The position numbers and the translations under genes are program-made. Shown one piece after another: positions 17,730-43,577 of a DNA stretch of 64,000 nt. Numbering within the stretch: the first letter of the stretch is position 1; each line of letters begins with the position of its first letter. Source of the stretch: Paramoeba atlantica (Eukaryota; Protista; Discosea); the NCBI GenBank assembly GCA_977017575.1, contig CDRNVI010000143.1:372001-436000 (forward strand), given 5' to 3'. Below the pieces are notes generated by a model that saw nothing but the letters and a program-made list of their open reading frames with translations, was not told where the DNA came from and did no database searches.

Positions 17730-20601
17730 CTCCTCTTTCACAACAACAACTGGGGCGACTGGGAGTTTCCAGTTTTCAACCATCCCCCTTGCTGGCCTTC
17801 CATCTTGGTTTCAAAGAAAATAGCCACCAGAAATAGATAACAGTTTTTTTTCCTTGTGAAAATTTGATTTTCACAGGGCCAGTCACTGTCATGGTGGACC
17901 CATCTTGAAAAATTTTCTGAGAGGCAATGACCCCCAACTTCTTTCGTATTTGTGAAGGGAGATCAAGTTGTCCCCAAAATTCTTTCTTCCCAGTTTTCCG
18001 ATTCATTTTGGTTTTGGTAACATTATCATCTACCAAAAAGAAAAAGAGGGCCTCAGGGAAATGTTGAATGAAAACCCGGCGAGAGAACCAATTTTTTGGA
18101 GCTTTTCCCCTCCACTAAAAGAATTTTTGTGTGTGTGAGTGAAAAGAATCTTTTGAAAAAAAAAACTCATGAGAGTGGTTTTTACCAATTTTTCAAGGGT
18201 CTTTGGGATTCTTTGCGCCAGAACACAAGGAACCATTTGTTCATTCGTTCGTTCATCATCATCTCGTGTTCGTTTCCACCTGCTGTTTTTTTCACTCTTT
18301 TTTTTCTGTTTGAAGCGTTTTGCTCTTTCCTAATCAAACAGAGACATTCTTCGGTCTCCCAAGTATCTTCGCTCATTAATTTGTTTTCCATTTCAAGAAG
18401 TTGAAAAATAACACCTCCTCCTCTCCCACACCATCTTGATCCCACCCAAAAATTTTGAGTGAAAAAGAACCCAATTATCATCCTTTTTGGCAATTGAGTT
18501 CATATCTTTTTGCCTTTTCGCGTTTTTTTTGGGGGTCTTTTTTGCCTATCCACTTTGCCACATCACTTCCACAGTCGTGTTTCAGAGCCAAAAAATGCGG
18601 GGGTTGACTTCTGGCTGTGTTCTCTCCCAAGAAATTTTTTTGACCCAAAGTGGTCAATATTGCTCCGTATCCTTTCTTTGAGGCATGGACATGAATGGAA
18701 AAGGTTTTCCTCTGAAATCAAGATGTACCAACACGAGGTATCTCTTTGATTCTTTTCTTCATTCCCTGAAATTCTTTGTCTGTCTGCCTCCTCCGTCCAT
18801 TTTCAGAATTTCTTTTCTTTCAGGAGTTGTCTCATATTAAATGTTCTTTTGTGAGCATTTGTGTAAGAATCTCCGGCACCAGCACTTACAATCCCGAGAA
18901 ATGTCTGTAATTCCTTATGGTGTTGGCTGGTGTTGTGTAATTTCCAATAGCCTCCCCCTTTGACGTTGTTCGCTTCAATACACCTTCTTTGGATGCAGTG
19001 TATCCCAAAAGCATGAATTTCGGTTTGCACAAAATGGGACTTTGGAAATATTGATTCTCACTTTGTGTTTTTCTATTCTTGTCAATATTTCTTGCAGAGT
19101 CTTGTAATGTGTTTTGAAGTCTTTCGAGAAGACAACAATCTAATGAAGAGATCTGCCATCTGAATCTTTTCTCCCATTGTGAGTCTCAGGTCATTATGAG
19201 TTTTCTGTTTATTCAGATTAGTGAGAGGATTTTTTTCTCCTTCTTCTTTCTTATTCTTGATACCTTTTAAGATTCCATCAATTTGTTTGATGAGCTCAGC
19301 ATTTCCTGTTGCATCTTCAGCATCAAGGTTTGCAATTACCTCTTGAAGCCTTCCATTCAATGTTGGAAACATCTCTCAGTCTCTTGTAAACCAGGCCTGA
19401 TCGTCCACCATATCATATTTTGGGTTCTCTCTGACCTCGTTGAAGAACATTCTCACTGTTTCTTCCCGCGGTCGCCCATTTTCCGTTGATCTGGATTTGA
19501 GATCTTTCTTCATGATGGGTGAGGATTTCACATTTGTGGCCTCTGTGATTGGAGTTTCCACACACAAGAAGCAGAGTCGAAGGTTGGAATGGACTTTCAG
19601 TTCTCGCTTTCTCTCTTCTATATTCGTCAGTATCTTTGATTCCCATCTTGGAAAGATCCATCTTAGTGACTCCCTTTGGTGTCTCTATTTTAACAGGTGA
19701 GAGAGAGGCGTTCATGACTTCAACAAAGTCAGTCCATGTTTTTCTGCTTTTGTAAATTTGATACTGAGCCTCTGTTTGAGTGTCCACCTCGATTTTGTGC
19801 TCAATCTCTGAGATGAGTTCCCGGTCTGAGACTTGGTATTGTTTCTTTCCTCTCTTTCTTGAGTAGAGTTTGACAAACTTGAGAGCTTTCTTCTTAAAGG
19901 TCAGATCCCCATAGCTGTCATCAATCCGAAATTGATTATACTGACTGATCGGGTTTCTGTACTCTGGAATCCCCGTAAGCCTCTTGAAGATGTGGGATTG
20001 TCTTTTGGAGGTCATCTTGTGGCACTGCTCCAATTGAGCCCCAGAGGAGAGACACTGCAAGGGAGATCCACCTCCCTTTCAGGACGTCTGCCATTGCGAC
20101 TGTCTTCTCCCACAGGTGGTACTGGCTATGCAATCCTGCACCCAGACACAAAAATTGGCGACTTTGGCCTTGGATCCAAAGTCTGTCTTTCCAACTCTGT
20201 AGTTCGAATTTTGTGTCTATTCTCCTTCAAATCATCTTTTACTCTTCCATCCCTTGTGGTTACTGCCTGGCTGATGGGTTGATTCCCATTCTTACTGAGG
20301 GGGGGTTCCTGATGGGCTTTGTTGAGACCGCTGGGAATAGGTCCTTATCTGAATAGTGATCGATGCCAAAAGCCTCCCTTCCATCTCTGAGAGCATCTCT
20401 TTGGCTTCATCCCTGGTGAAGGTGGGTTCCACTTGGGGGTACCATCCTTTCTCCCTCTGGGGGTTCTTCCTGTTCCTCAAGTTCTTCCTGGTGGAACAGT
20501 TCTCTTTCTTGGGGGTTTTCAGGCTCTTGCCTTTCCTCGGGGTGGGCTCAACCTTCTTGATCACTGCCAGCAGAATCACTATCCCCATCAGGGTTTTCTA
20601 C
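17730..20601 (-). mobile_element. Degenerate Ty3/Gypsy retrotransposon (gag, RT C-terminus, RNase H, integrase relics), interrupted by the MULE
   Basis: Frameshifted remnants HFVQTEI..KELQTFLGIVS..MRQLLKEKKF*KWTEEA (RT/connection), FSIHVHASKKGYGAIL (RNase H) and VHHDS..YFWW (integrase H2C2-like), plus gag-like ORFs at 19082-20588. Confidence 0.75.
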
Positions 20602-20713
20602 GGTACAGGCAGCAAAGTTGATAGTTGCTGTTGTTCGAAAGTTGCTTCAACTTTTCATCAACCCTTATCCTTTTAAAACAACACAAAAACAACGCAATTC
20701 TTTTTGTCAGGAA

Positions 20714-20833
20714 GAAAAAACTTTTTTTGAGACTTTGATGACTAGATAATAAGAGTTGTTTTGAAGTTGTTGAAAAAAACTTTTTTTGAGACTTTGATGA
20801 CTAGATAATAAGAGTTGTTTTGGAGTCGTCAAA
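20714..20833. repeat. 59-bp tandem duplication in the MULE left subterminal region
   Basis: Two copies of AAAAAACTTTTTTTGAGACTTTGATGACTAGATAATAAGAGTTG. The ATAATAAGAGTTG core recurs inverted at 25343-25355 near the right TIR. Confidence 0.9.
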
Positions 20834-21168
20834 AAAAAGAAAATTGATTTTTAATTCATTCCAAAATTCTTTTTTTTATTTTTTCCGTTGCTCTCTCTTC
20901 TTCTTTTTTCCCCGCCGCTTCTAATCTCAGGGGGAAGACAATCAGCTTTTCAATTTCTCTCTTTCTTTCATTTTACCTACAAAGAAAATGGATGTGACTC
21001 TTTTTTGTCTGTTGGGAATTTTGACCGTTGGAGTTGGGATCAACAGCTCTTTTTTTCAACACTTTTTCAATTTCCAATTTAATTTTTCAAGAAAAAACAA
21101 AAAGGTTTGTATTTTTGTTTTGGAGTTTTTTTAATTCCAACTCATGAACATATTTTGTAGAGCTATAG

Positions 21169-23822
21169 ATGTCTTCAATTACATCAATCAAGAAAGGAGA
21201 CTATGTTAAAATCTCCAACTGTGAGGATTATGGATATGTTCAGGATGCTGCCTACTTCCAGAATGAATACCACCTCGCTCTTATCTGGGCAGAAACAGGA
21301 AGAAGAGAAGATGTATCATTTGTTGATATTTCTCTTGTTTCTTGTTTTGAACCAGCCCATGATCAAGGTACGCTTTGCCCAGAGTGCAAAATCCCAATGC
21401 AACAAATGGTTTGCTTTTTTTTTCTTTGACAATTTTAAAGTTTTCTTAAACTAAACTTCTTTTGAATAGATCAACAAAACAACAAGTGAAAAATTTTTGG
21501 CATGTCCATCATATCGCTTGCGATCTGCTCGAAAATGTCGATCGAGAACTATTTCGCTTCCAGACTTCGCGAAAACCCACACTTCAATCAAGCTTGGTGT
21601 TGATGATTGTGATGATACTTGGAACTGGGTACGAGGTCGGCGATCAAACTCAACAGAGGTGGCCATACCAAAATGGGCTCAATTATTGATCCCTGAGGAG
21701 TACCATTCTCAAAAGTTTACCGGTCAGTTATTTCATTGCTCGACTGGGCGATCAAGAAGTCGTCATCGGAAAGATGAAGGCAGGTGCCCTTGGAAAAAGT
21801 TCTTGGTATTTGATTCCCAAGCTTTTTTGAAAGGAACTCCTCCCCCCCAAGATGCGATTTGTACAGTTTATCAAGGGTATGATGGAGAGGGAAATCTTTC
21901 TTCAAAACCTGCTGACCATGCTCTCTGGAACCCAGGGGAACATAAAAAACCTCAAGCAGTGTTAGCAATGAGAAAGGATTGGGTTGAACACCTTGAAAAA
22001 TCGCAAAGTATCACCCCAAGTGAGACAATTCTAAGTTTTCAAGAAAAACTAGTTGAGAGTGATCTCTCTCCATCAACAAAAGCGAATCTCATCCAACAAA
22101 GTTCAAAGATGGGAAATACTTTGAAATATCGGAAACAAAAGGTTTTTTTTTCTTTTTTTCTTTTTTTCTTTTTTTCTTTTTTTTTTTCTTTTTTTTTTTT
22201 TCTTTTTTTTTTTGTGAATCAATTTATATGGATTGATTGAATGTTCTTCCAGCAATCGTTTCAAGAATCACGAATTTCTGATGTTGAGAAAATGGTTCTA
22301 TGCCCTCATACAGGGGAGGTCTCATTCAAATTTGGGTTTGAAGATCATCCCTCTGTCTTCATTGAACTTGGTTCGAAGATCCTAATTGCCAATTATGTAA
22401 AACCAGATATGAAAGAATTTTTCATTGATGGTGTTTTTAAATTATCCCCCTCTCTACAACTGATGATTCTTGGTGTTCCCCTGAGAGGTTTGTTATCTTC
22501 CATTTGAAAAGAAAAGTTTAATTCATTTTCATTTTTTTGATAATTCTTTTTCATGTTAGAGGATACAAAAGATAAAATACATGGAACAAATTTTTGTCCT
22601 CTATCTTGTTTATTAACAAATCGAAAAACTGAATTCACCTATCTCCGGTGGTTTGCTGACCTCAAATATATTGGGTTGGAATTGAATGATTGTTCTATTT
22701 TAACTGATATGGAGTTTGGTATTGGAAATGCAGGTTGATTATTTGAATGACAATTATTTTCTTTTTTTACTTTTATCGATTTGTTTTGTTTTAATAGGAA
22801 AAGTAATGTGGGAGGAGTCTGAATGGAAGTTATGTTACTTCCATGTGATCATGAATGCTAAGGACAAGTTAAAAGCCCTTGGGGTTCCGAAAGAAACTTA
22901 TTCTTTTTATCTTGGGGTATTGAAGGAAATGAAAGAACAAGAAGATGAGAAACAAGCAGAAAATGTATGGGAAAATTTTCAAATTGCTGTTACTTGTCCA
23001 AAAGGAAAGCTTTGGTTTGGATTTTGATTTATTTTATTCTTTTTTTTTTCCTTTGAAAAATGAAACAAGTGTGTAAAGTAAAATTTATATTTTATTTTTT
23101 GTTTTTAGGCTTGAGTATATGGAGAAATGGATAATTCCTCGTTTGTCACAATGGATTGGAGGAAAAACGAATAATTTGATTGAGAGGTTCAATCGATACC
23201 TGAAAGAAACTCTTTTTCGGGGTCAAACATACTCCAATGCTGCAACAGTTGTTGACATCCTTAGTCGATATTTTTCAATTTTAGAAACTGTTTTGGTGCC
23301 CCCACCCAAAGAAGAAGAACATACAAATGAGATTGTTTTCGAGGAACAACTTCTTTTTTCAGAAGAAGTGGACAGGAAAGATACAACAAAACACTTGTTG
23401 GAAAAAAATCTCTCAATTTCTCTCGGAAGAAAGGTTTTTTCTTTATTTTTCATTTTTGAATGATTTTTTTTTAAAATAAAATAATAATGTTATTATTCTA
23501 GACTAGTACAATAAATAAAAGGAAAAGGAGGGATTCAAGCAAAAAAAAAGATGTTTTGGAAACAAGAGAATTTCTCAATCCTCCCCATAATGACTTTGAT
23601 TGTTCGATCGAAGCAGTTGTGCCTCCGCCTTCCTCTTCATCATCTTCCTCTTCTTCATCTTCATCTTCATCTGGTTCCCTTGGTTCATCTGATGCTCCTG
23701 ATTCTCCTGATGATTCTCCTCCTCGAAAGAGAAAACGTTCCCCAATGACAATTCCTGTTGAGGGAAGTGAAACTTGGAGTGAGTCAAGAAAGATTCAGTG
23801 GTTCGCTTCACATGAATTCTAA
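21169..23822 (+). CDS. MULE transposase, 7 exons, 727 aa (21169-21408, 21470-22141, 22253-22487, 22560-22733, 22798-23014, 23109-23433, 23502-23822)
   Basis: Six GT-AG introns (61, 111, 72, 64, 94, 68 nt) join the track ORFs in frame with no stop. MULE motifs: FFIDGVFK (D), ILTDMEFG (D), CYFH, LEYMEKW..KTNNLIERFNRYLK (E). N-terminal CPEC..CPSY..C zinc ribbon. Confidence 0.9.
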
Positions 23823-23983
23823 TGAATGAAATGAAATAAAAGTTTTTATTTTTGAGAATTTTTTTTTATCTTTCCTTCTTTTCTGCACAAGTCATTATTC
23901 TCTTTCTATTCTTTTTTTTTCTTCCAAGTTCTCCATTTATTTTGAATCAATTATACAAAAAAAGTTTGAAGAAGAACAAAGAT

Positions 23984-24952
23984 TTATTTTTTAAATAAAA
24001 GTTTTTTATTTTTTATTTTCCTTCTTTCTTTGCTTCTTTTCTGCAGGTGACATTCTCTTTTTTTTTTTTTTGGTGGTTCCTTCACATTCGGGATGGTTCG
24101 ACTTCCAAAATCTTCACGCAACATTGTATCCCACTCCACACCACGCAACTTTAAAAAGGTTCGGTGAAGAACAAAGATTCCAACCATACGATCATCTTCA
24201 TGAGGAAAGAAAGGGTCTTCATCACCCTGATAGTCTCGACTCCCATGCCAAAGTGCATCAGAGTCCAACATCAAAACATCTCCAACTCTAATATTGAACG
24301 CTCTCTTAGATCCTCCAATTTCAAGAGCTCCTCCAGTCGAATTTGGGTTCACATGGACTCCAAAAATAAATGCAACATAATCAAATGAGTCCTTGTGAAA
24401 CAAACTGAATCCAAGAGGGGAGAGAAATAAATGAAACAAGCCAAAATTTGAACATAATTGGTTCTCGCCCTTCAAAAGGTTGTAGATATCCGGTCGTTTC
24501 TCTTTCACCAACAAAGTTGCCTTTTCTCCAAGTCTCTCCAAAACTGGAGTCAATATTGGATATTGTAGCTTATCTTCATATTTCCCTCCAAATCCAGCTG
24601 GATAAGTTGGATCCCCAGGGTTACAATGGCCTTGAGCAGGCCACACTCCCATGATAGTTTCAGGACGATCTCCGCGTTTGTCCTCTTTTCTTTTCCAATA
24701 ATCGCAAGAATGAAGAGTTTCGTGGAGCATCTCCATTTCTTTCACAGAAAAAAACTGTTTTACAAAGTGAGCTCGATTCACTTTTCCATCTCGAGTCTGA
24801 ACCTCAACATACACATTCTTGTTGTGGATATAACAACGATCAGCAGTTTCCCGTTGCAAATCTTCCTCTGACTCGGTAAAGACCACTCGATCTCTTGGTG
24901 TTTTCAATGATCCTCTTTTTCGGTTTGAAACTTCATCCTCTTTGTTACTCAT
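23984..24952 (-). CDS. TET/JBP-like 2OG-Fe(II) dioxygenase, 322 aa
   Basis: HxD triad start FHKDSFD, GGALEI strand, GDVLMLDSDALWHG (distal His) and downstream RMVGIF (2OG-binding Arg). Spacing resembles the Tet_JBP family as I recall it; no HMM search was run. Confidence 0.75.
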   Translation of the reverse strand: MSNKEDEVSNRKRGSLKTPRDRVVFTESEEDLQRETADRCYIHNKNVYVEVQTRDGKVNRAHFVKQFFSVKEMEMLHETLHSCDYWKRKEDKRGDRPETIMGVWPAQGHCNPGDPTYPAGFGGKYEDKLQYPILTPVLERLGEKATLLVKEKRPDIYNLLKGENQLCSNFGLFHLFLSPLGFSLFHKDSFDYVAFIFGVHVNPNSTGGALEIGGSKRAFNIRVGDVLMLDSDALWHGSRDYQGDEDPFFPHEDDRMVGIFVLHRTFLKLRGVEWDTMLREDFGSRTIPNVKEPPKKKKRECHLQKRSKERRKIKNKKLLFKK

Positions 24953-25422
24953 CGTGAAACTTCTGTGTTTCTACAACTTTCCAAAAAGAATGAAAATTTC
25001 AAACAGAAAAAAGAAAGAGACAAAGAAAAGAGAGAAAAGACAAGAAAGAGAGAAGAGAGAGAGAAAGAAGAAAACAGAAAGAAAACTTTTCCAAGAAAAA
25101 TTCACGGGATTTAGTTTTCTATTTTTTTTCACCAAAAAAGAAAAAAAAATTGTCCCCTTTGAAAAGAATAAATTTTATTTTCAGGACCCTAAATTAAATT
25201 GTGCTTCAAAGTGTTTTTTGTGGCTTTGAAAGAGTCCTTTTGAAAACAACTTTTCGCCTGCTCATATCATAAGGTCTGGTCTATTTCATTCATTTTTCTT
25301 GTGGAAGTAGGAATAAATCAAATTGTGCCAGCAACTTTTCAGCAACTCTTATTATGGATAAAGATGACATCATCAAATACTTCTTTTTCTCAACCGCAAC
25401 TATCAACTTTGCTGCCTGTACC

Positions 25423-25750
25423 GTTTTCTACCAAGTAAGTCTCCTTTAACTCATCCCAGAAAAGAGCCATCGATCTACCAGCATTGCCAATGTAAAAACT
25501 GAAAACAAAGTGGTGTGTGAAAAACTGATCTTTAGAAACCAAAAGGGAAAACGACAAAAGAAAAGCGCATCGCGTCGCGTCGCCTTTGTGATGTCATCAA
25601 ACAGTCCCTATCAAGGGTGTTCAGTGAAGTTGGCTGAAAGTTGGGCCGAAAGTTCAAGGGTTAAAAATAGCCTTTATTCACAATCTCTTCACGGTATCCT
25701 CCCAATCAAGTTTTTTTCCCAAATAAATGATTTCTGTTATATGTTGTGAG
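25423..25750 (-). mobile_element. 5' part of the Gypsy relic split by the MULE (gag start, candidate PBS, LTR end)
   Basis: ATG at 25470 reads MALFWDELKETYLVEN and continues in frame across the empty site into PDGDSDSAGSDQEG at 20592. Upstream is ..TTTTTACA-T-TGGCAATGCTGG (LTR end plus PBS-like). The outer boundary is uncertain. Confidence 0.6.
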
Positions 25751-37001: not shown

Positions 37002-37192
37002 TGTAAAATGATAGTTTTTACAGTGAATAATAAAAGCAATCAAAATGTTGTTGTGCAATTTGAGAATTTGAAAAGTGAACGTTGGACCGTTTCAGAATTT
37101 GGCGGTTCCACGTCAGCACTCATTCTCCTTTATTTAGTAAATCAAAAAGGCATAGATGTCTTTATCAAGGAGTCGTCGATTTCTCCGTTGCA
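37002..37192 (-). repeat. 3' LTR (191 bp)
   Basis: Direct repeat of 43387-43577. Confidence 0.97.
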
Positions 37193-40100
37193 TCCTCCCA
37201 CGCGATGAGAACCTCGGCTCCTCAGATATTTCTGAAGATGAAGGAGGGGAAGAAGGAGTAGACTCATTAGCAGGTTGACCAGTTGGAACAGTTGTTGGTG
37301 AAGCCACTCGGGATTCTTCACGATCAGCACCAAGTATATCAAAGTTGATGGGGTTATGCAGATGATAATCATCTAAGAGCTCCTCAGCATCAACATCACT
37401 TGCTCGGCACCATTCAGCTGATGTTTTTCGGAATCCTTTAAATTGAATCTTGTAAAAGAGTTCTCCATTACGAACAGCATGGTTCAGGATTTTTTCAATC
37501 TCAAAATCATATCCGTGATCGTCGAAGGAGACGTTCTCCGGTCCAGAGGAGTCTTCAAGACCAATTTCGTTCGACCCAGGGTCCAGGTTAATCTCATGAC
37601 GGAATTGGAGTTTCTTGATAATTGAGATGTTTGCTTTGAATGGAGGATCTTTTCGGGATAGATCTTGTAATGTATAACTTCCATTCTCATAATCTCCCAC
37701 AACCATATACACTTTTCGATGGAATAAGGCTCGATATTTCTTTCCAAGATCAGCTTCATCCGTAGTTGTTCCGAATTTTCTTAACAATACATGGTCACCA
37801 ATTTTGAGTTGTGCGATCCTTGACTTATGAGTTCGATTATAGAGTTCAGATTGACTTTCAGCAACTCGCAATCGTTCAGCTCGAACCCACTCAATGACTC
37901 TATCTCGGTCGGTTTGGAGTTTGCTCACATATTCATCTCTGGTCACATACGGCCGATAGACTGACCCATACATCATATCGAGAGGCATAATTGGTGGTCG
38001 TCCAAAATGTACTTGAAAGGGCGTATATGTGGTTGATGAAGATCGAGAGGTATTGAAGGCAAACTCAACTAAAGGCACTAATAAATCCCAGTCATCTCTA
38101 AATTTGTCCACGTAGGCTCGTAGGATTGACTTGGTGACTTTGTGTGTCCATTCTACTCGACCATTGCTCTTAGAGTTATAAGGAGAAATTGTGGTTTGTT
38201 TCAATCCCATCAAATTAGATAATTCAGTAAAGAGTTCGTTCGCAAATTCAGGTCCGTTGTCAGTAACGATCTTCAATGGCATTGAATTTACGCAAATGTA
38301 CTGCAATAAAGCTCCAGCGGCGTCCTTCGCAGTGGGCTGAGGGATTGGATATAACCTCAGATATCCAGAAAAGTTATCCACAATTGCCAATAAATGAGTA
38401 TTTCCCCTGGCTGAAGTCTTTGGGCCTTTTGTACAATCAAGGTGGACAGTGACTCCAGGGTATGAAGCCATATATGGGTTCAATTCGGATGTCAAGGTCT
38501 TTCCTTTTGAATTGATTGCACAATTCAAGCATCGATGACAATAGCCTTTAATATAAAGGGACATACCTGGAAAATAATAAGAAGCAGCAATTGCTTGATA
38601 GAGACGTTCATACTTCCGATGTCCAGAGACAAGGGAGTCATGATAGGCCTTTAGGACATCATCCCAAAGTGCTCGAGGTAATACAGCGGGAGGTCCGGTC
38701 TCGGCTGGAGCTGATTCATCAATCTTTCTTAAAATACCATTCGCATCGATCCAGTATTTGAATGCTTGTCTTTGCAGCATTCTAAGTTCTGACCGGCGTT
38801 TTGGGAGTATCCCATAAAGGTAGTTGATGATTTTTGAGCAAAACTTGTCATATCTTTGGGCTCGAGCCAAGAAAGGAAGCGGAACAAGAAGACGGTCTAT
38901 GGTGTCTCCATCGACCTCTATGGTGTCCTCCCCTTGAGAAAGTTCTTCGCCTTTTTGCCAAAGCGTTCTGACCTCAGGGAGATCAAATGTTTGGTCTGGT
39001 GAAGAATCAATTGCCTCTATTTTTTCAAGGATATCTTTTTGTCTCGACATTGCTCTGCTTTTTGACGTTTCGTCTAGCGCGAGGTCAATTATTTTTTCGA
39101 AACAATTTGTCATGTAATCTTTCTTTTCATCTTTGTTGTCTTTGTATCCAACAAAGTGCCTACTCAACGCATCTGGAATAGCCATCAGCTTTCCAGGTTT
39201 ATGTATGACGAGAGGATTATATTCTAATGTTCGGGCAACCCAATCACGCAACATTGCATGTTCAGGGATTTTTGTTCCAGTTCTTGAGAAGACCGAGCGC
39301 AGAGCTTGACAATCGCAAACTACAATCGGTTCTCTTCCGTGAACATAATACTTAAAGTTTTTTAAAGCCCAAATAATTCCTAATCCTTCTCTGACAGGAT
39401 TAGTATATTTTTGTTGAGTCGGTGTTAATGCCTTTGAAGCATACTCGATTACTCTGTGATAACCTTTGTCATCTAATTGTGTTAGGATAGCTCCAAGACC
39501 TCGAGAACTAGCATCAACATGGATGAAGAATCTTTTTGAGAGATCTGGATGTGCTACACAGGTTTCTTTTTTGAGTATGTCTTTCAGTATTTGAAATTCT
39601 TCTTCAGCTTTTTCTGACAGGAAAAATCTCGATTCTTTTAATGTTTTTGCTTTTCTTAGATGAAAAGTTAATTTGGAGAGGTTTGGTATGAATCTTTTCA
39701 ACCAAGTAACCATTCCTATAAATATCTCAACCTCCTTTGGTGATTTTGGAAGGGGATAATTTTGGATTGCTTCAACCTTTTTTGGATTTGGTGATAAACC
39801 ATCCTTTGTAGCGACAAAGCCAAGTATTTCAAAAGTTGGTTTACAGAAAGAACATTTTAAAGGTTGTAAAATTAAATTATGTTCCTTTAGTCTTCCTAGT
39901 ATATCCCTCAAGTCTTCTAAATGTTTTTCAAAGGAATTGCTGAAACATATAATGTCATCGACATATGCAAAACAGCATCTCCATATGAGTCCATTCAATA
40001 CAGCTTCAATATAACGTTGTTGTGTTGCTGGAGCATTACACAATCCAAATGGCATTGAGAGAAATTCCCAAAGTCCATATTTGCTTGTAAAAGCTGTTTT

Positions 40101-43100
40101 TTCAACATCTTGTTGTCGGATCGGAATTGACCAAAAGGCGTCCGTCAGATCAATTGATGAGAAATATGAGGAATTGCCAAGGGCTCCAAGAATTGTATCC
40201 ATTCTTGGAAGAGGATATGCATCCTTCTTTGTGACATTATTAAGACGACGAAAATCAACACAAAATCGGATTTTGCCATTCTTTTTGTCTGCCAATAGAA
40301 TTGGTGAAGCCCATGGTGAGGTTGAAGGTTGAATTACTTTTCTTTTCACCATTTTATCAATATGTTTCCAAATAATGTAATCTTCAGCAGGAGTTGTTTT
40401 TCGAGGAACTGTGCGAACTGGTTTAGCAGTTGCATCAGTTTCGATCTTATGCTCCGTTGCTGTTGTTCGGGTCAATGGACCTTCTCTTTTTTGTTCATCC
40501 CAAAGGTCTTTAAATTCAGTTAGCAGTTCTGCTAATTTAATTTGTTGTTGAGAATTCAAGTTTGTAGCATTGATTTGAAATGTCTCATATGCTTCTTTTA
40601 ATTCAGATTTCATTTGATTTTCTTCACCAAAATCCGGTGGTTCATTTTCTGGATTTGCAAGGAGAGCAAAAACTTGATTTATCTTTGATTCGTCAAAAGC
40701 ATCTGTTTCCATTGTTGGATTTATTTTGGGTTGTTTTTGACTTTGAATCGGGGAGATTTCTTCTGCAAAATTTTCTGAAAATTTGCGTTTTCGTCCCTCT
40801 TTAAGAAACAACATCTTATTTTCTTTAGCAACCCAAGCGTCAAGCCAAGGGCTGTTGAGAGCTTTAAAATAGTTTGCTCCCACTTTTGAATTAAATGGTT
40901 TCTTTTCTTTTGATTTTTGATCTTGTTCTTTTGTATTCACCTTTTTTACAGGTTGAATATCTTGAAGATCAAGGAGCGAACGATTTGATATTTGAAGAAG
41001 TTCTGTTTGTTCAACATCATCATCGTTAATCTCATGTATGGAACCAAGTTCCCATCCTTTTTTAAGTTTTACATATTTGTTTGTTGGATTAATTACCAAT
41101 ATGTTTGATTGATAGATGTTTTTCTTTCTTCCAGGTCTTTCTTTTTGGGTAATTGAGATAAGACCTTGTGGAGCAATTAATTTGCCTTTTCCACTATCTC
41201 TTGGAAAGAAGAAACATTCCGGTGATGAGACTTGTCCTTTTGCTGTGAGTGGCACTATCACAGCCGATCTTGGGGGAATGCCACTGGTTACTGCCGTTGT
41301 GACCAGGGTCTTACTTCTCCGGTTCCTTCTGTCATCAAGAAGTTCCAAGTCCGGACTAAGTTCATTCATTTGAAGATTATTTTCTTTTGGCTTTGCCTGA
41401 ACAAGCTTTTTTTCTTGCCACAGAATATAATCGCCATCCGTTCCAAGTTTTAGTCTTTTCATAGCTGGCCAGCCTATCAAAGTTTGGACAGGAAGGTGGT
41501 CGAATATGAAGAACCATAAATTGGCTTCAAAATGTGAGAATTTTACTCTCAGTAAAACTTCTTCATTTACAACAACTTTGGAAGAATTTCCAACTGTGAC
41601 TTTTAAAGTATGGATTTTTCTTCTTCTTAATATTTGAATACCAGGTCTTTTTAATTGTTGTAAACTGATTGCATTAATTCCAGATCCTGTGTCGAGGCAT
41701 GTTGTTGAATTTAGATTGCCTATTTTCGACTCAAATTCCAGAGGTCCCCCGACATCACGGCTTTCTTCTCCTTTTTGTTCAATTTGACTTAAGGAGAGGA
41801 TGCGGATGGGTTCTGAATTGGTTAATTCTGGAGAATTAATTGCCATTTTGTAATGTTCGGTTGGGATATCATGGACATCCATAAATTGTCTATTTTCTTT
41901 CTCTTGTGTATTTTCTTTCTCTTGTGGAGAAGGATTTTTACTTGAATTTTTACAAGAAAGATCAGAATACGGTGTATCATGATTTATTGGAGTTTGTTGA
42001 GTTTGACCACTACTTTGTATGAAGAGACTTTTCAATTCATTGAATTGTTGGTTCATCTTTTCATCCATTTTGTGGGCAAATTCTTCAAATTCTTGTTTTC
42101 TTTTTTTATGTGGGTCTTGGTCTCTATTTGAACCTTGACCTTGTTGTTTTTGTTGTCCTCTTGGACCTTGATCTTTCAACCCTCTTTTCCTTTTTCTGGT
42201 TACTTTGCAGCGTTGCGTAATGTGGGTGTCTTGATTACCACAATGGCGGCAATATTTCAACCCTTTTTGCATCGCTTCTTTCACCAAAGGACAATTTTTG
42301 GGTACATGACCAAAGTCTTCACAGGCTCGGCATTGCAACTCCCGTGCCCTCTTTCTCGCCTCTTTCAGCTCTTGTCCATTAGGGTTCAAGGCTAATGAAA
42401 GGGAGTTTCGGGTCTTATCAGCGAGTTGTTTTGTTGGGTAGTCCTTTTGGTACTGGACAGTCAGAGCAATAGAAAGCATGTCGCCTCCTTTAGCTGTAGC
42501 TTTCGCTCCCTCCCATGCCCGATGGTACGAAGAATCTTGTACTCGGGCTTCGAAAATGTCTCTAACTTCTTCGAGTTGGGTGTCCTCACTCCCCTTTTCC
42601 TTGACAGCAATGTTCAAGAACTTCATTGTATGAGTCATGAAGTCCTCAGAGATATCGAACTTGTACGAGTAAAGAGCACTTGTATCAGTATCAAGGGGTT
42701 TGTAAACGTGACTTGAAGCCATACAGAGATCAAAAACCAACTTCTGGAAGGTTTGAGGATGACCGATGATGTCAAGTCCGAATGCTATCAACTTGGGTCG
42801 TGCGAGGGTTACAGCGAGTTCATTATTTGGCCACCCATTGGTTTTCCAAACTTGATAAAGAGCATCAAGCTTTTCTGTTTTGGTTAGATTCTTTGAGAGG
42901 CCATCGATCGCTCTTTCGATTGATTGTTGGAGAGCTTTGTCAGCCACAAAGGATTTCTCGTCCGGTATCGGTACCAAAGCATCCTTTCCCAAACGATGGT
43001 TTTGCGTTGTTGAAGATGAAGAGATACTTTGATCGAGTTCTTGGATCAGAGTTCGTCTCGCACCCACATTTGAAGCAGCAACCACGACTTTGGGCAGGGG

Positions 43101-43373
43101 AATCAATTCAACTTTGCCTTTGTCATTGACCTTTTGCTGGTAAAGGGTGCCATTTATGACTACTAGTTGCATTTCCGAGGAATCGGGAAGACCAGAAGGA
43201 TCAGAATGAAGGGGAGAGGGGGTACTAGAATCAAGAGGGGAATCACTTTCAGCGCTGGGAGTTTCGCCAAGAGAAGGAGGACTGAGCTTGGGCGTTCCAG
43301 GATGTTTCTTAGGCGACTTTTTCGTCTTACCAGGGGTCTCTCCTTCTTGTTTCTTATCTTTATCCTTTCCCAT
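37134..43373 (-). CDS. Gag-Pol polyprotein, 2079 aa (CCHC knuckles, PR, dUTPase-like insert, RT, RNase H, IN, chromodomain)
   Basis: CEDFGHVPKNC knuckle, CLDTGSG (protease), RFCVDFRRLN/YVDDI (RT), IHVDASSRGLGAIL (RNase H), HDSLVSGH..CHRC, VHLD/VTDNGPEF/GRVE (integrase) and FEIEKIL..FYKIQFKGF..EW (chromodomain). Real start is MGKDKD at 43373. Confidence 0.97.
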   Translation of the reverse strand: MGKDKDKKQEGETPGKTKKSPKKHPGTPKLSPPSLGETPSAESDSPLDSSTPSPLHSDPSGLPDSSEMQLVVINGTLYQQKVNDKGKVELIPLPKVVVAASNVGARRTLIQELDQSISSSSTTQNHRLGKDALVPIPDEKSFVADKALQQSIERAIDGLSKNLTKTEKLDALYQVWKTNGWPNNELAVTLARPKLIAFGLDIIGHPQTFQKLVFDLCMASSHVYKPLDTDTSALYSYKFDISEDFMTHTMKFLNIAVKEKGSEDTQLEEVRDIFEARVQDSSYHRAWEGAKATAKGGDMLSIALTVQYQKDYPTKQLADKTRNSLSLALNPNGQELKEARKRARELQCRACEDFGHVPKNCPLVKEAMQKGLKYCRHCGNQDTHITQRCKVTRKRKRGLKDQGPRGQQKQQGQGSNRDQDPHKKRKQEFEEFAHKMDEKMNQQFNELKSLFIQSSGQTQQTPINHDTPYSDLSCKNSSKNPSPQEKENTQEKENRQFMDVHDIPTEHYKMAINSPELTNSEPIRILSLSQIEQKGEESRDVGGPLEFESKIGNLNSTTCLDTGSGINAISLQQLKRPGIQILRRRKIHTLKVTVGNSSKVVVNEEVLLRVKFSHFEANLWFFIFDHLPVQTLIGWPAMKRLKLGTDGDYILWQEKKLVQAKPKENNLQMNELSPDLELLDDRRNRRSKTLVTTAVTSGIPPRSAVIVPLTAKGQVSSPECFFFPRDSGKGKLIAPQGLISITQKERPGRKKNIYQSNILVINPTNKYVKLKKGWELGSIHEINDDDVEQTELLQISNRSLLDLQDIQPVKKVNTKEQDQKSKEKKPFNSKVGANYFKALNSPWLDAWVAKENKMLFLKEGRKRKFSENFAEEISPIQSQKQPKINPTMETDAFDESKINQVFALLANPENEPPDFGEENQMKSELKEAYETFQINATNLNSQQQIKLAELLTEFKDLWDEQKREGPLTRTTATEHKIETDATAKPVRTVPRKTTPAEDYIIWKHIDKMVKRKVIQPSTSPWASPILLADKKNGKIRFCVDFRRLNNVTKKDAYPLPRMDTILGALGNSSYFSSIDLTDAFWSIPIRQQDVEKTAFTSKYGLWEFLSMPFGLCNAPATQQRYIEAVLNGLIWRCCFAYVDDIICFSNSFEKHLEDLRDILGRLKEHNLILQPLKCSFCKPTFEILGFVATKDGLSPNPKKVEAIQNYPLPKSPKEVEIFIGMVTWLKRFIPNLSKLTFHLRKAKTLKESRFFLSEKAEEEFQILKDILKKETCVAHPDLSKRFFIHVDASSRGLGAILTQLDDKGYHRVIEYASKALTPTQQKYTNPVREGLGIIWALKNFKYYVHGREPIVVCDCQALRSVFSRTGTKIPEHAMLRDWVARTLEYNPLVIHKPGKLMAIPDALSRHFVGYKDNKDEKKDYMTNCFEKIIDLALDETSKSRAMSRQKDILEKIEAIDSSPDQTFDLPEVRTLWQKGEELSQGEDTIEVDGDTIDRLLVPLPFLARAQRYDKFCSKIINYLYGILPKRRSELRMLQRQAFKYWIDANGILRKIDESAPAETGPPAVLPRALWDDVLKAYHDSLVSGHRKYERLYQAIAASYYFPGMSLYIKGYCHRCLNCAINSKGKTLTSELNPYMASYPGVTVHLDCTKGPKTSARGNTHLLAIVDNFSGYLRLYPIPQPTAKDAAGALLQYICVNSMPLKIVTDNGPEFANELFTELSNLMGLKQTTISPYNSKSNGRVEWTHKVTKSILRAYVDKFRDDWDLLVPLVEFAFNTSRSSSTTYTPFQVHFGRPPIMPLDMMYGSVYRPYVTRDEYVSKLQTDRDRVIEWVRAERLRVAESQSELYNRTHKSRIAQLKIGDHVLLRKFGTTTDEADLGKKYRALFHRKVYMVVGDYENGSYTLQDLSRKDPPFKANISIIKKLQFRHEINLDPGSNEIGLEDSSGPENVSFDDHGYDFEIEKILNHAVRNGELFYKIQFKGFRKTSAEWCRASDVDAEELLDDYHLHNPINFDILGADREESRVASPTTVPTGQPANESTPSSPPSSSEISEEPRFSSRGRMQRRNRRLLDKDIYAFLIY

Positions 43374-43384
43374 TGGAGCCTCCA
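43374..43384 (-). promoter_or_regulatory. Primer-binding site, tRNA-Thr-type
   Basis: TGGAGGCTCCA, 2 nt after the 5' LTR, is complementary to a tRNA 3' end TGGAGCC-U73-CCA, typical of Thr isoacceptors. Confidence 0.75.
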
Positions 43385-43386
43385 AA

Positions 43387-43577
43387 TGTAAAATGATAGT
43401 TTTTACAGTGAATAATAAAAGCAATCAAAATGTTGTTGTGCAATTTGAGAATTTGAAAAGTGAACGTTGGACCGTTTCAGAATTTGGCGGTTCCACGTCA
43501 GCACTCATTCTCCTTTATTTAGTAAATCAAAAAGGCATAGATGTCTTTATCAAGGAGTCGTCGATTTCTCCGTTGCA
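43387..43577 (-). repeat. 5' LTR (191 bp)
   Basis: Direct repeat of 37002-37192. Confidence 0.97.

Follow-up and report, generated by a model that had tools for sequence, protein, structure and literature searches.

Which kind of mobile element carries a gene for a putative DNA-base oxidase in an amoeba, and what would it gain from such a gene? The question is raised by a locus of Paramoeba atlantica (Discosea) within a stretch of 64,000 nucleotides (GenBank assembly GCA_977017575.1, contig CDRNVI010000143.1, positions 372,001 to 436,000 of the forward strand). The whole of this stretch is called the window here, and positions are those of the window unless another locus is named. From the sequence alone, it had been proposed that a complete Mutator-like element (MULE) with a TET/JBP-like dioxygenase gene as cargo lies at 20593–25431. 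The window copy is, to all appearance, a structurally intact and autonomous member of a young P. atlantica DNA transposon family. Taken as a whole, a young Mutator-type transposon with a fixed TET/JBP gene, likely countering a cytosine-methylation-linked defence, is the reading that we favour and consider likely. According to this proposal, a Mutator-type DDE transposase would move the element by cut-and-paste, leaving 9-bp target duplications, and its fixed cargo, a second gene under a promoter of its own, would encode a divergent TET/JBP dioxygenase with basic tails of the nuclear type. The enzyme would oxidise 5-methylcytosine (5mC) in DNA to 5-hydroxymethylcytosine (5hmC) and further products, on the element or more widely. 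This oxidation would counter a host defence linked to cytosine methylation, which would be visible as the massive C>T decay of older copies.

The element, including its target site duplications (TSDs), spans about 4.8 kb. Its ends are formed by terminal inverted repeats (TIRs) of 27 bp: GGTACAGGCAGCAAAGTTGATAGTTGC on the transposase side (20602–20628, forward strand), where the alignments to other copies also end, and its exact reverse complement on the dioxygenase side (25396–25422, reverse strand). When up to three mismatches were allowed, GGTACAGGCAGCAAAGTTGATAGTTGC matched only twice in the whole window, at the two TIRs, and never in 100 shuffles. The similarity of the inverted repeats extends past the 27 bp, to 31 of 32 bases. 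The same 9-mer, GTTTTCTAC, adjoins both TIRs (20593–20601 and 25423–25431) as an exact TSD, and other copies show other 9-mers. The perfect 27-bp TIRs and the exact 9-bp TSD of the original prediction were therefore confirmed by the window-wide motif search, the shuffles and the comparison of flanks. The 27/27 match is probably the product of one C>T change in the window copy, whose 21st base in the dioxygenase-side TIR is T; it is C in L002, L004, L005 and L007, with 26/27 matching there.

Next to the left TIR, a subterminal region (20629–20932, forward strand) carries copies of the motif AAAGTTG(C/T)T as well as a tandem duplication of 59 bp (20715–20832, 93% identity). AAAGTTG occurs three times within 330 bp of each element end, compared with three times in the interior of about 4 kb, and the subterminal motifs are putative binding sites for the transposase. 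Further inside, the transposase gene (21169–23822, forward strand) and the dioxygenase gene (23984–24952, reverse strand) are convergent, with their stop codons 161 bp apart. The transposase gene comprises seven exons (21169–21408, 21470–22141, 22253–22487, 22560–22733, 22798–23014, 23109–23433 and 23502–23822), separated by six introns of 61–111 nt that are all GT..AG. Their removal leaves a joined frame of 2184 nt, coding for 727 amino acids with no internal stop. This reconstruction of open reading frames (ORFs) and splice sites bore out the claim of a spliced, stop-free transposase and a convergent, intact second gene within about 4.8 kb. The dioxygenase gene is intronless and encodes 322 amino acids, with basic N- and C-terminal tails. 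A purine-rich stretch (25041–25085) lies upstream of it. Disruption of a host gene by the insertion was considered and is not supported, as the reconstructed empty site has no long ORF spanning the insertion point.

At least six further copies of the element are present in a P. atlantica assembly (ENA assembly ERZ24900291). The 322-aa protein belongs to a 90%-identity cluster of 15 sequences, among them two MMETSP0151/EukProt P. atlantica transcripts and ORFs of 10 ERZ24900291 contigs, six of which (L001, L002 and L004–L007) were compared by BLAST. The alignments of the window element to these six copies end exactly at the TIR tips. L005 (95.8% identity) and L007 (96.9%) are full-length copies, L006 (98.6%) is cut off by the end of its contig, and the copy in L004 has two insertions nested in it. 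Internal deletions have removed the equivalent of window 20950–22343 from the copies in L001 and L002, which keep the dioxygenase at 99% identity; in L002, a 3.3-kb derivative with part of the transposase gone, the dioxygenase is intact and 99.4% identical. The dioxygenase gene is thus held by six of six further copies, both internally deleted non-autonomous ones included, and not by one copy only, as a one-off Pack-MULE capture would have it. Among the copies seen, both genes are intact only in the window; L005, L006 and L007 have in-frame stops in both. The splice sites are kept in L005 and L006, and one acceptor is changed to AA in L007.

Exact 9-bp TSDs flank both sides of the copies in L004 (ATTCTTTGG) and L005 (TCTTTTGGG). 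The TSD of L007 is imperfect, CCTTGTCT on one side and CCTTGTCCT on the other, differing by one indel, CCTTGTC(C)T, and no TSD was found at the flanks of L002. Overall, 9-bp TSDs are exact at three insertions (window, L004 and L005) and near-exact at a fourth (L007). The BLAST search suggested for copies with distinct 9-bp TSDs was therefore productive, giving six copies, two of them with different exact duplications and one with an imperfect duplication. Copies delimited by the TIR tips and flanked by different 9-bp TSDs therefore constitute a mobile family that makes 9-bp duplications, its boundaries, copy structure and gene integrity being as directly observed as its mobility.

The window also contains an empty site of the family. 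A single CTCCTTTAT lies at 11917–11925, and L001 carries an element at the corresponding place; the L001 flank on the side of the transposase TIR corresponds to the window from 11917 onward, with 99.5% identity. The element in L001 (6994–9808) lacks 556 bp at one end, including the dioxygenase-side TIR, and CTCCTTTAT is nonetheless found on both sides. The second CTCCTTTAT abuts the 556-bp terminal deletion, and the arrangement further left is not simple. This structure may have arisen by abortive excision followed by repair.

Two insertions in the copies are worth recording. A 1.8-kb insertion (L004 5145–6968) interrupts the dioxygenase gene of that copy and holds a called gene of 550 amino acids (5171–6823) with a match to RVT_3 (RNase H-like). 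A repeat of about 420 bp, nested in the same element copy (L004 9921–10340) and also found at L005 4000–4407 and L006 7116–7534, may be a small non-autonomous transposon.

The older copies have decayed in a highly biased manner. Using the window copy as the reference, and over window 20602–25040, L005 shows 148 differences, of which 137 are C>T or G>A (split 72/65); the same changes account for 116 of 123 differences in L007 (63/53) and 111 of 118 in L004 (57/54). They therefore represent 93–95% of the differences in these three copies, on both strands. Per site, the change affects 30–55% of CpG cytosines, 6–7% of cytosines in TpCpH (where H is A, C or T), 3–4% of other cytosines and 0.2–0.35% of A/T sites, and 203 of the 286 changed sites are private to a single copy. 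The many stop codons of the old copies are due to this decay. Other transposon-like repeats in the copy loci have transition-to-transversion ratios of about 5:1 to 28:1, with 17 transitions and 0 transversions in one pair. The same transition excess is seen between L004 946–2158 and L007 5945–7159, and between the L004 copy of the repeat of about 420 bp and its counterparts in L005 and L006. In large segmental duplicates of the same DNA, the ratio is only about 0.5:1 to 2:1.

The process targets cytosines, most strongly those in CpG, and the pattern is of the kind that deamination of methylated cytosine or a system resembling repeat-induced point mutation (RIP) would leave. Such decay would be what makes a 5mC oxidase worth carrying, and a benefit to the element through anti-silencing seems about as probable as its absence. 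Two observations speak against the proposal: L004, L005 and L007 were decayed by C>T despite carrying the dioxygenase gene, and the observed/expected CpG ratio across the window, 0.51, is only suggestive.

The transposase is probably of the Mutator (MULE) superfamily. The assignment was made because of the 9-bp TSD, a D68D-20-CxxH-...-E layout, a weak IS256 match and leads from a language-model Atlas. The catalytic core (22427–23184, forward strand) comprises D363 (22427–22429), D432 (22706–22708), C453xxH456 (22833–22844) and E538 (23182–23184), in the motifs FFID363GVF, ILTD432MEF, C453YFH456 and NNLIE538RFNRYLK. These residues were assigned by inspection and not by a family model; they are spaced by 68 residues from D to D, 20 from the second D to C and 105 from the second D to E. 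Mutator transposases are recognised by a DDE triad in which C/D(2)H comes soon after the second D and a long insertion precedes E (PMC3942029), and TSDs of MULEs measure 8–11 bp, that of Entamoeba MULE1_EI being 9 bp (PMC6446971). TSD within this range, C/D(2)H-bearing DDE layout and TIRs are all present in the P. atlantica element. Exon 2, the N-terminal part, contains Cys/His patterns that resemble WRKY/FAR1-type fingers and were confirmed by no model. Fingers of this type are common in MULEs. Against PDB sequences, the exon 5 and exon 6 pieces gave only chance matches, as did tblastn of the exon 5 piece against a plasmid sequence, pLW043, which lacks an IS256 transposase.

The principal alternative for this part of the reading accepts the transposon and its TET/JBP cargo and places the transposase in another superfamily (P, hAT, KDZ or an undescribed one). 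It is unlikely in our view, and it draws on several observations that run counter to a Mutator origin. No exon piece matched any Pfam model at E values up to 10, the MULE and Transposase_mut models (PF10551 and PF00872) included; these scans were made on single exon pieces, and the catalytic domain is split over exons 3–5. A protein search with the exon 3 piece returned only copies from the same assembly, and a metagenome scan with exon 2 returned none. Furthermore, the exon 6 piece has weak NCBIfam matches to IS3 (E 0.0064) and IS481 (E 0.13) around the E motif, and the TIRs, at 27 bp, are short for MULEs. An RNase H fold with a C/DxxH motif is, moreover, common to P, hAT and KDZ transposases.

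Against this alternative stands the 9-bp TSD itself, found at three to four independent insertions. Target duplications are 5–8 bp long in hAT elements, 7–8 bp in P elements, 5 bp in Transib and 2–3 bp in CACTA. For Zisupton, the length is 8 bp (PMC12730594). The 105 residues between the second D and E, with CxxH 20 residues after the second D, also fit Mutator/IS256 (PMC3942029). Among 18950 NCBIfam models, the only match of the exon 5 piece, which bears CxxH, was IS256 (E 0.0023, 17 bits against a cut-off of 150). In the Atlas, every named cluster for exon 3 was MULE, ZSWIM1-3 RNaseH-like or ALS2CR8, and exon 6 led to one SWIM-bearing cluster. The predicted MULE transposase is hence probable, given the TSD length, the motif layout, the weak IS256 match and the Atlas leads, and the check with the PF10551 model that had been proposed for it gave no match on the exon pieces.

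The second gene encodes, on sequence and modelling evidence, a divergent member of the TET/JBP family of 2-oxoglutarate (2OG)/Fe(II) dioxygenases. Its active-site codons lie at 24188–24397 (reverse strand): H186 (24395–24397), D188 (24389–24391), D191 (24380–24382), H236 (24245–24247) and R255 (24188–24190). The iron triad HxD...H and the arginine for 2-oxoglutarate are kept, and all four residues align with those of NgTet1. A word-indexed protein search retrieved only the element's own cluster and one metagenome protein, P0002, with 40% identity. Among 1.84 billion proteins, the profile built from the window protein and P0002 found 121 representatives at E ≤ 0.001, and 42 of these reached E ≤ 1e-30. 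When 57 members of this family were aligned, H186 and D188 proved invariant, and conservation was at least 90% for G102, F173, G181, D191, G208, D225 and H236; the eight closest relatives all have R255.

The link from this family to TET/JBP proteins is transitive. Nine of the 57 members match Pfam Tet_JBP at E ≤ 0.01, and three of them, P0124 (45.7 bits), P0136 (41.5) and P0133 (35.1), pass its gathering cut-off of 34.9 bits; the profile had found these three at E values of 3.9e-6 to 4e-4 in the 1.84 billion proteins. For the close relatives P0020, P0021 and P0024, Tet_JBP is the only Pfam family matched at a level of E about 1e-3, with scores under its cut-off. Searched against PDB sequences, the family profile had NgTet1 (5cg8/4lt5) as its best match (E 4.9e-5), with HKDxxD, the distal H and R aligned. 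In addition, the language-model Atlas assigned the dioxygenase to Tet_JBP with a score of 0.95 and 207 shared features.

The predicted fold points in the same direction. An AlphaFold2 (AF2) model from a 7-row alignment had a mean predicted local distance difference test (pLDDT) of 41, and the deep alignment from the exhaustive profile search gave a pLDDT of 90.1 and a predicted TM-score (pTM) of 0.84. By Foldseek against the PDB, ranks 1–24 were all CcTet (2e-10), CMD1, NgTet1 and TET2, with AlkB from rank 25 and PHD2 at rank 36. Among Swiss-Prot models, JBP2 and JBP1 occupied ranks 1–15 (1.7e-12 to 3.9e-9), and NgTet1 was at rank 18 (1.1e-7). The clusters of the AlphaFold database (AFDB) returned '2OGFeDO JBP1/TET oxygenase domain', Tet-like fungal proteins and one KDZ-associated protein, and phage Tet_JBP clusters ranked first when the Atlas was searched by shape.

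Direct tests did not support the assignment, and the Pfam comparison counts against it. The 322-aa protein and its core matched no Pfam model at E values up to 10, Tet_JBP (PF12851) included, and the same was true of the 40%-identical P0002; the direct HMMER check that had been suggested thus failed. Searches of PDB sequences with phmmer and with a three-sequence profile gave nothing useful, and a metagenome scan with the dioxygenase alignment gave no match. The protein was filed under TET/JBP because the transitive sequence links, the fold and the conserved residues agreed on it where the direct Pfam comparison did not. With this qualification, the TET/JBP-like nature that had been predicted for it was upheld.

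On its substrate, D191 is the most informative residue. It occupies the third position after the HxD motif (HxD+3), in HKDSFD, which aligns with HKDNLD of NgTet1. It has been reported that Asp234 of NgTet1, Asp350 of CMD1 and Asn1387 of TET2 bond N4 of 5mC and disfavour N6-methyladenine (6mA), CcTet having Gly at this place (PMC11040006). D191 lies at the N4-reading position, and 5mC is therefore favoured as the substrate, a choice that we hold to be somewhat better than even. Hydroxylation of thymine, as in JBP proteins, which would leave the DNA of the element with 5-hydroxymethyluracil (5hmU) or a mark resembling base J, is a less probable option. In its favour, and against 5mC, the best structural matches among reviewed proteins are the thymine hydroxylases JBP2 and JBP1, ahead of NgTet1. 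The motif spacing of the window protein, HxD-47-H-18-R, is also one that we take to be close to that of JBP1. However, an Asp at HxD+3 contacts an amino group at N4 in NgTet1 and CMD1 (PMC11040006), and thymine has a carbonyl there. The best Foldseek matches among solved structures are 5mC oxidases, the decay of repeats by C>T, centred on CpG, suggests that the pressure comes from cytosine methylation, and the element carries no glucosyltransferase.

A role on RNA, on a protein or on some small molecule, with no more than the fold in common with TET/JBP proteins, is improbable. Such a role would agree with the failed Pfam Tet_JBP comparison, with the few family members that match WelO5, TauD or 2OG-FeII_Oxy_3, and with AlkB and PHD as the second tier of structure matches. 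Nevertheless, the WelO5 and TauD matches span only about 25–40 residues around the distal His, and the top structural matches in four libraries are all TET/JBP. The base-contacting Asp is retained, and both tails are basic, as expected for a nuclear protein. A 2OG family that does not act on nucleic acids, which the original prediction had named as the outcome that would undo it, is accordingly not where the protein falls, TET/JBP proteins being ahead of AlkB and the prolyl hydroxylases.

The dioxygenase gene is transcribed. Two MMETSP0151 transcripts, P0003 and P0004 (315 amino acids, labelled 'complete'), agree with the window protein as far as a run of lysines. P0004 is 97% identical overall; beyond the lysine run, a difference in the length of an A-run shifts the frame of the tail. 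Moreover, an RNA-labelled run of 2015 contains 30% of the element's words, approximately the size of the dioxygenase mRNA.

Passive capture of the second gene from the host (Pack-MULE), without function for the element, is highly improbable: MULEs do capture host genes (PMC6446971), and the gene did not stop the decay of L004, L005 and L007, but it is complete rather than fragmentary, has a promoter side of its own, is kept in every copy (intact in L002 though the transposase is partly lost), conserves its catalytic residues across a family at 30–50% identity, is transcribed, has homologues that accompany unrelated transposases elsewhere, and has near copies in the protein collection that all belong to this element family. 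As a class, Pack-MULEs were ruled out for the window element by its full transposase ORF and its complete, conserved and transcribed cargo gene.

The association with other transposases is seen in metagenomic sequences. In a JGI metagenome contig (L012:1144–3897), a piggyBac-type transposase ORF (PF13843, E 4.7e-32) is followed after 150 bp, on the same strand, by P0017 (50% identity), the dioxygenase's closest outside relative. In L010:3–4493, and also in L011, TIRs of 29 nt, 93% complementary and starting TATGG/TATGC, enclose a 1037-aa ORF and another relative, P0018. The 1037-aa ORF is unclassified, with a weak match to YagK_YfjJ_C (E 0.0015), and L010 is probably another type of TET-carrying transposon. 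A further relative, in L008, is near an unclassified 802-aa ORF. It is conceivable, albeit doubtful, that a divergent TET/JBP clade in amoebae serves as a portable anti-silencing module, passed between unrelated transposon superfamilies and protecting active copies against a RIP-like defence by C>T hypermutation that is linked to 5mC. If true, transposon and host would be in an arms race that is convergent with that of fungi, in a lineage from which there is no description of either side.

The presence of TET/JBP genes in DNA transposons is established in fungi, where Iyer et al. (2014; cited in PMC12730594) first linked them to KDZ/Plavaka elements. The statement that such genes are known mainly from fungal KDZ elements was right as to their existence and understated their range, since the widest survey, Kojima 2025, describes ten other TET+ transposon lineages, all of them fungal (PMC12730594). 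In that survey, MuDR appears only for VANDAL anti-silencing and SET-domain cargo (PMC12730594). A literature search, limited in coverage, found neither a reported Mutator–TET/JBP combination nor any amoebozoan transposon reported to carry a TET gene, so that no earlier description of the same architecture came to light within the literature searched. As in the fungal TET+ transposons, a cut-and-paste element bounded by TIRs and TSDs encloses a transposase gene and a separate TET/JBP gene, and this arrangement, with the TET/JBP gene inside a TIR/TSD-defined element present in several copies, is what defines a TET+ transposon. Both groups also share the occurrence of one dioxygenase clade with several unrelated transposases, a presumed anti-silencing role, and a host with C>T decay of repeats, comparable to fungal RIP/methylation. 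They differ in the host, here an amoebozoan, and in a dioxygenase clade too divergent for Pfam Tet_JBP.

Among Mutator elements, two sources (PMC6446971, PMC12730594) cite the VANDAL21/Hiun MULEs of Arabidopsis, whose VANC gene is likewise an extra gene directed against DNA-methylation silencing of the element itself. In those accounts, VANC is a non-enzymatic, sequence-specific DNA-binding factor, whereas the cargo described here is predicted to be a base-modifying oxidase. Entamoeba MULE1_EI and EMULE are Mutator-type elements of Amoebozoa with a 9-bp TSD (PMC6446971). Compared by description, they have one ORF and TIRs of 187 bp, in contrast to the 27-bp TIRs and second gene of the P. atlantica element (PMC6446971).

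With NgTet1 (Naegleria), CcTet (Coprinopsis), CMD1 (Chlamydomonas) and TET2, the predicted enzyme shares the double-stranded beta-helix, HxD...H and the 2OG arginine; with NgTet1 and CMD1, it also shares the Asp at HxD+3, and NgTet1 is similarly compact. It is only 10–16% identical to these proteins, lacks a Cys-rich or CXXC module, and is known here from its sequence and a model. Of the reviewed AlphaFold models, those of kinetoplastid JBP1 and JBP2 match it best (E down to 1.7e-12). Unlike them, the window protein has no J-binding or SNF2 domain, and its Asp at HxD+3 suggests cytosine over thymine. Paramoeba harbours a kinetoplastid endosymbiont, Perkinsela; nothing in this analysis shows a transfer from Perkinsela.

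TET-carrying transposons as such are known; what appears new is the carrier superfamily (Mutator-like), the eukaryotic supergroup of the host and the dioxygenase clade, which Pfam fails to recognise. Transposon-borne enzymes of the DNA-demethylation type have been thought a fungal speciality, and the P. atlantica element indicates that the strategy extends well beyond fungi, whether it originated there or reached other lineages by spread. In this amoeba, a cytosine-directed defence against repeats, with C>T decay strongest at CpG, and a candidate counter-defence would be open to joint study. Furthermore, a compact TET/JBP enzyme of 322 amino acids, from a clade missed by current models, would be useful for annotation and is a candidate base-oxidising tool.

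Two other features of the window were noted. An uninterrupted ORF of 2096 amino acids (37134–43424, reverse strand), with RVT_1, RT RNase H, integrase zinc finger, rve and chromodomain, is apparently an intact retrotransposon of the Ty3/Gypsy chromovirus type. Finally, positions 1–7620 and 54720–62346 form a 7.6-kb direct duplication with 97.4% identity, 54.7 kb apart, of which a third copy lies at L001 1–5213; its transition-to-transversion ratio of about 2:1 is ordinary, unlike that of the transposon copies.

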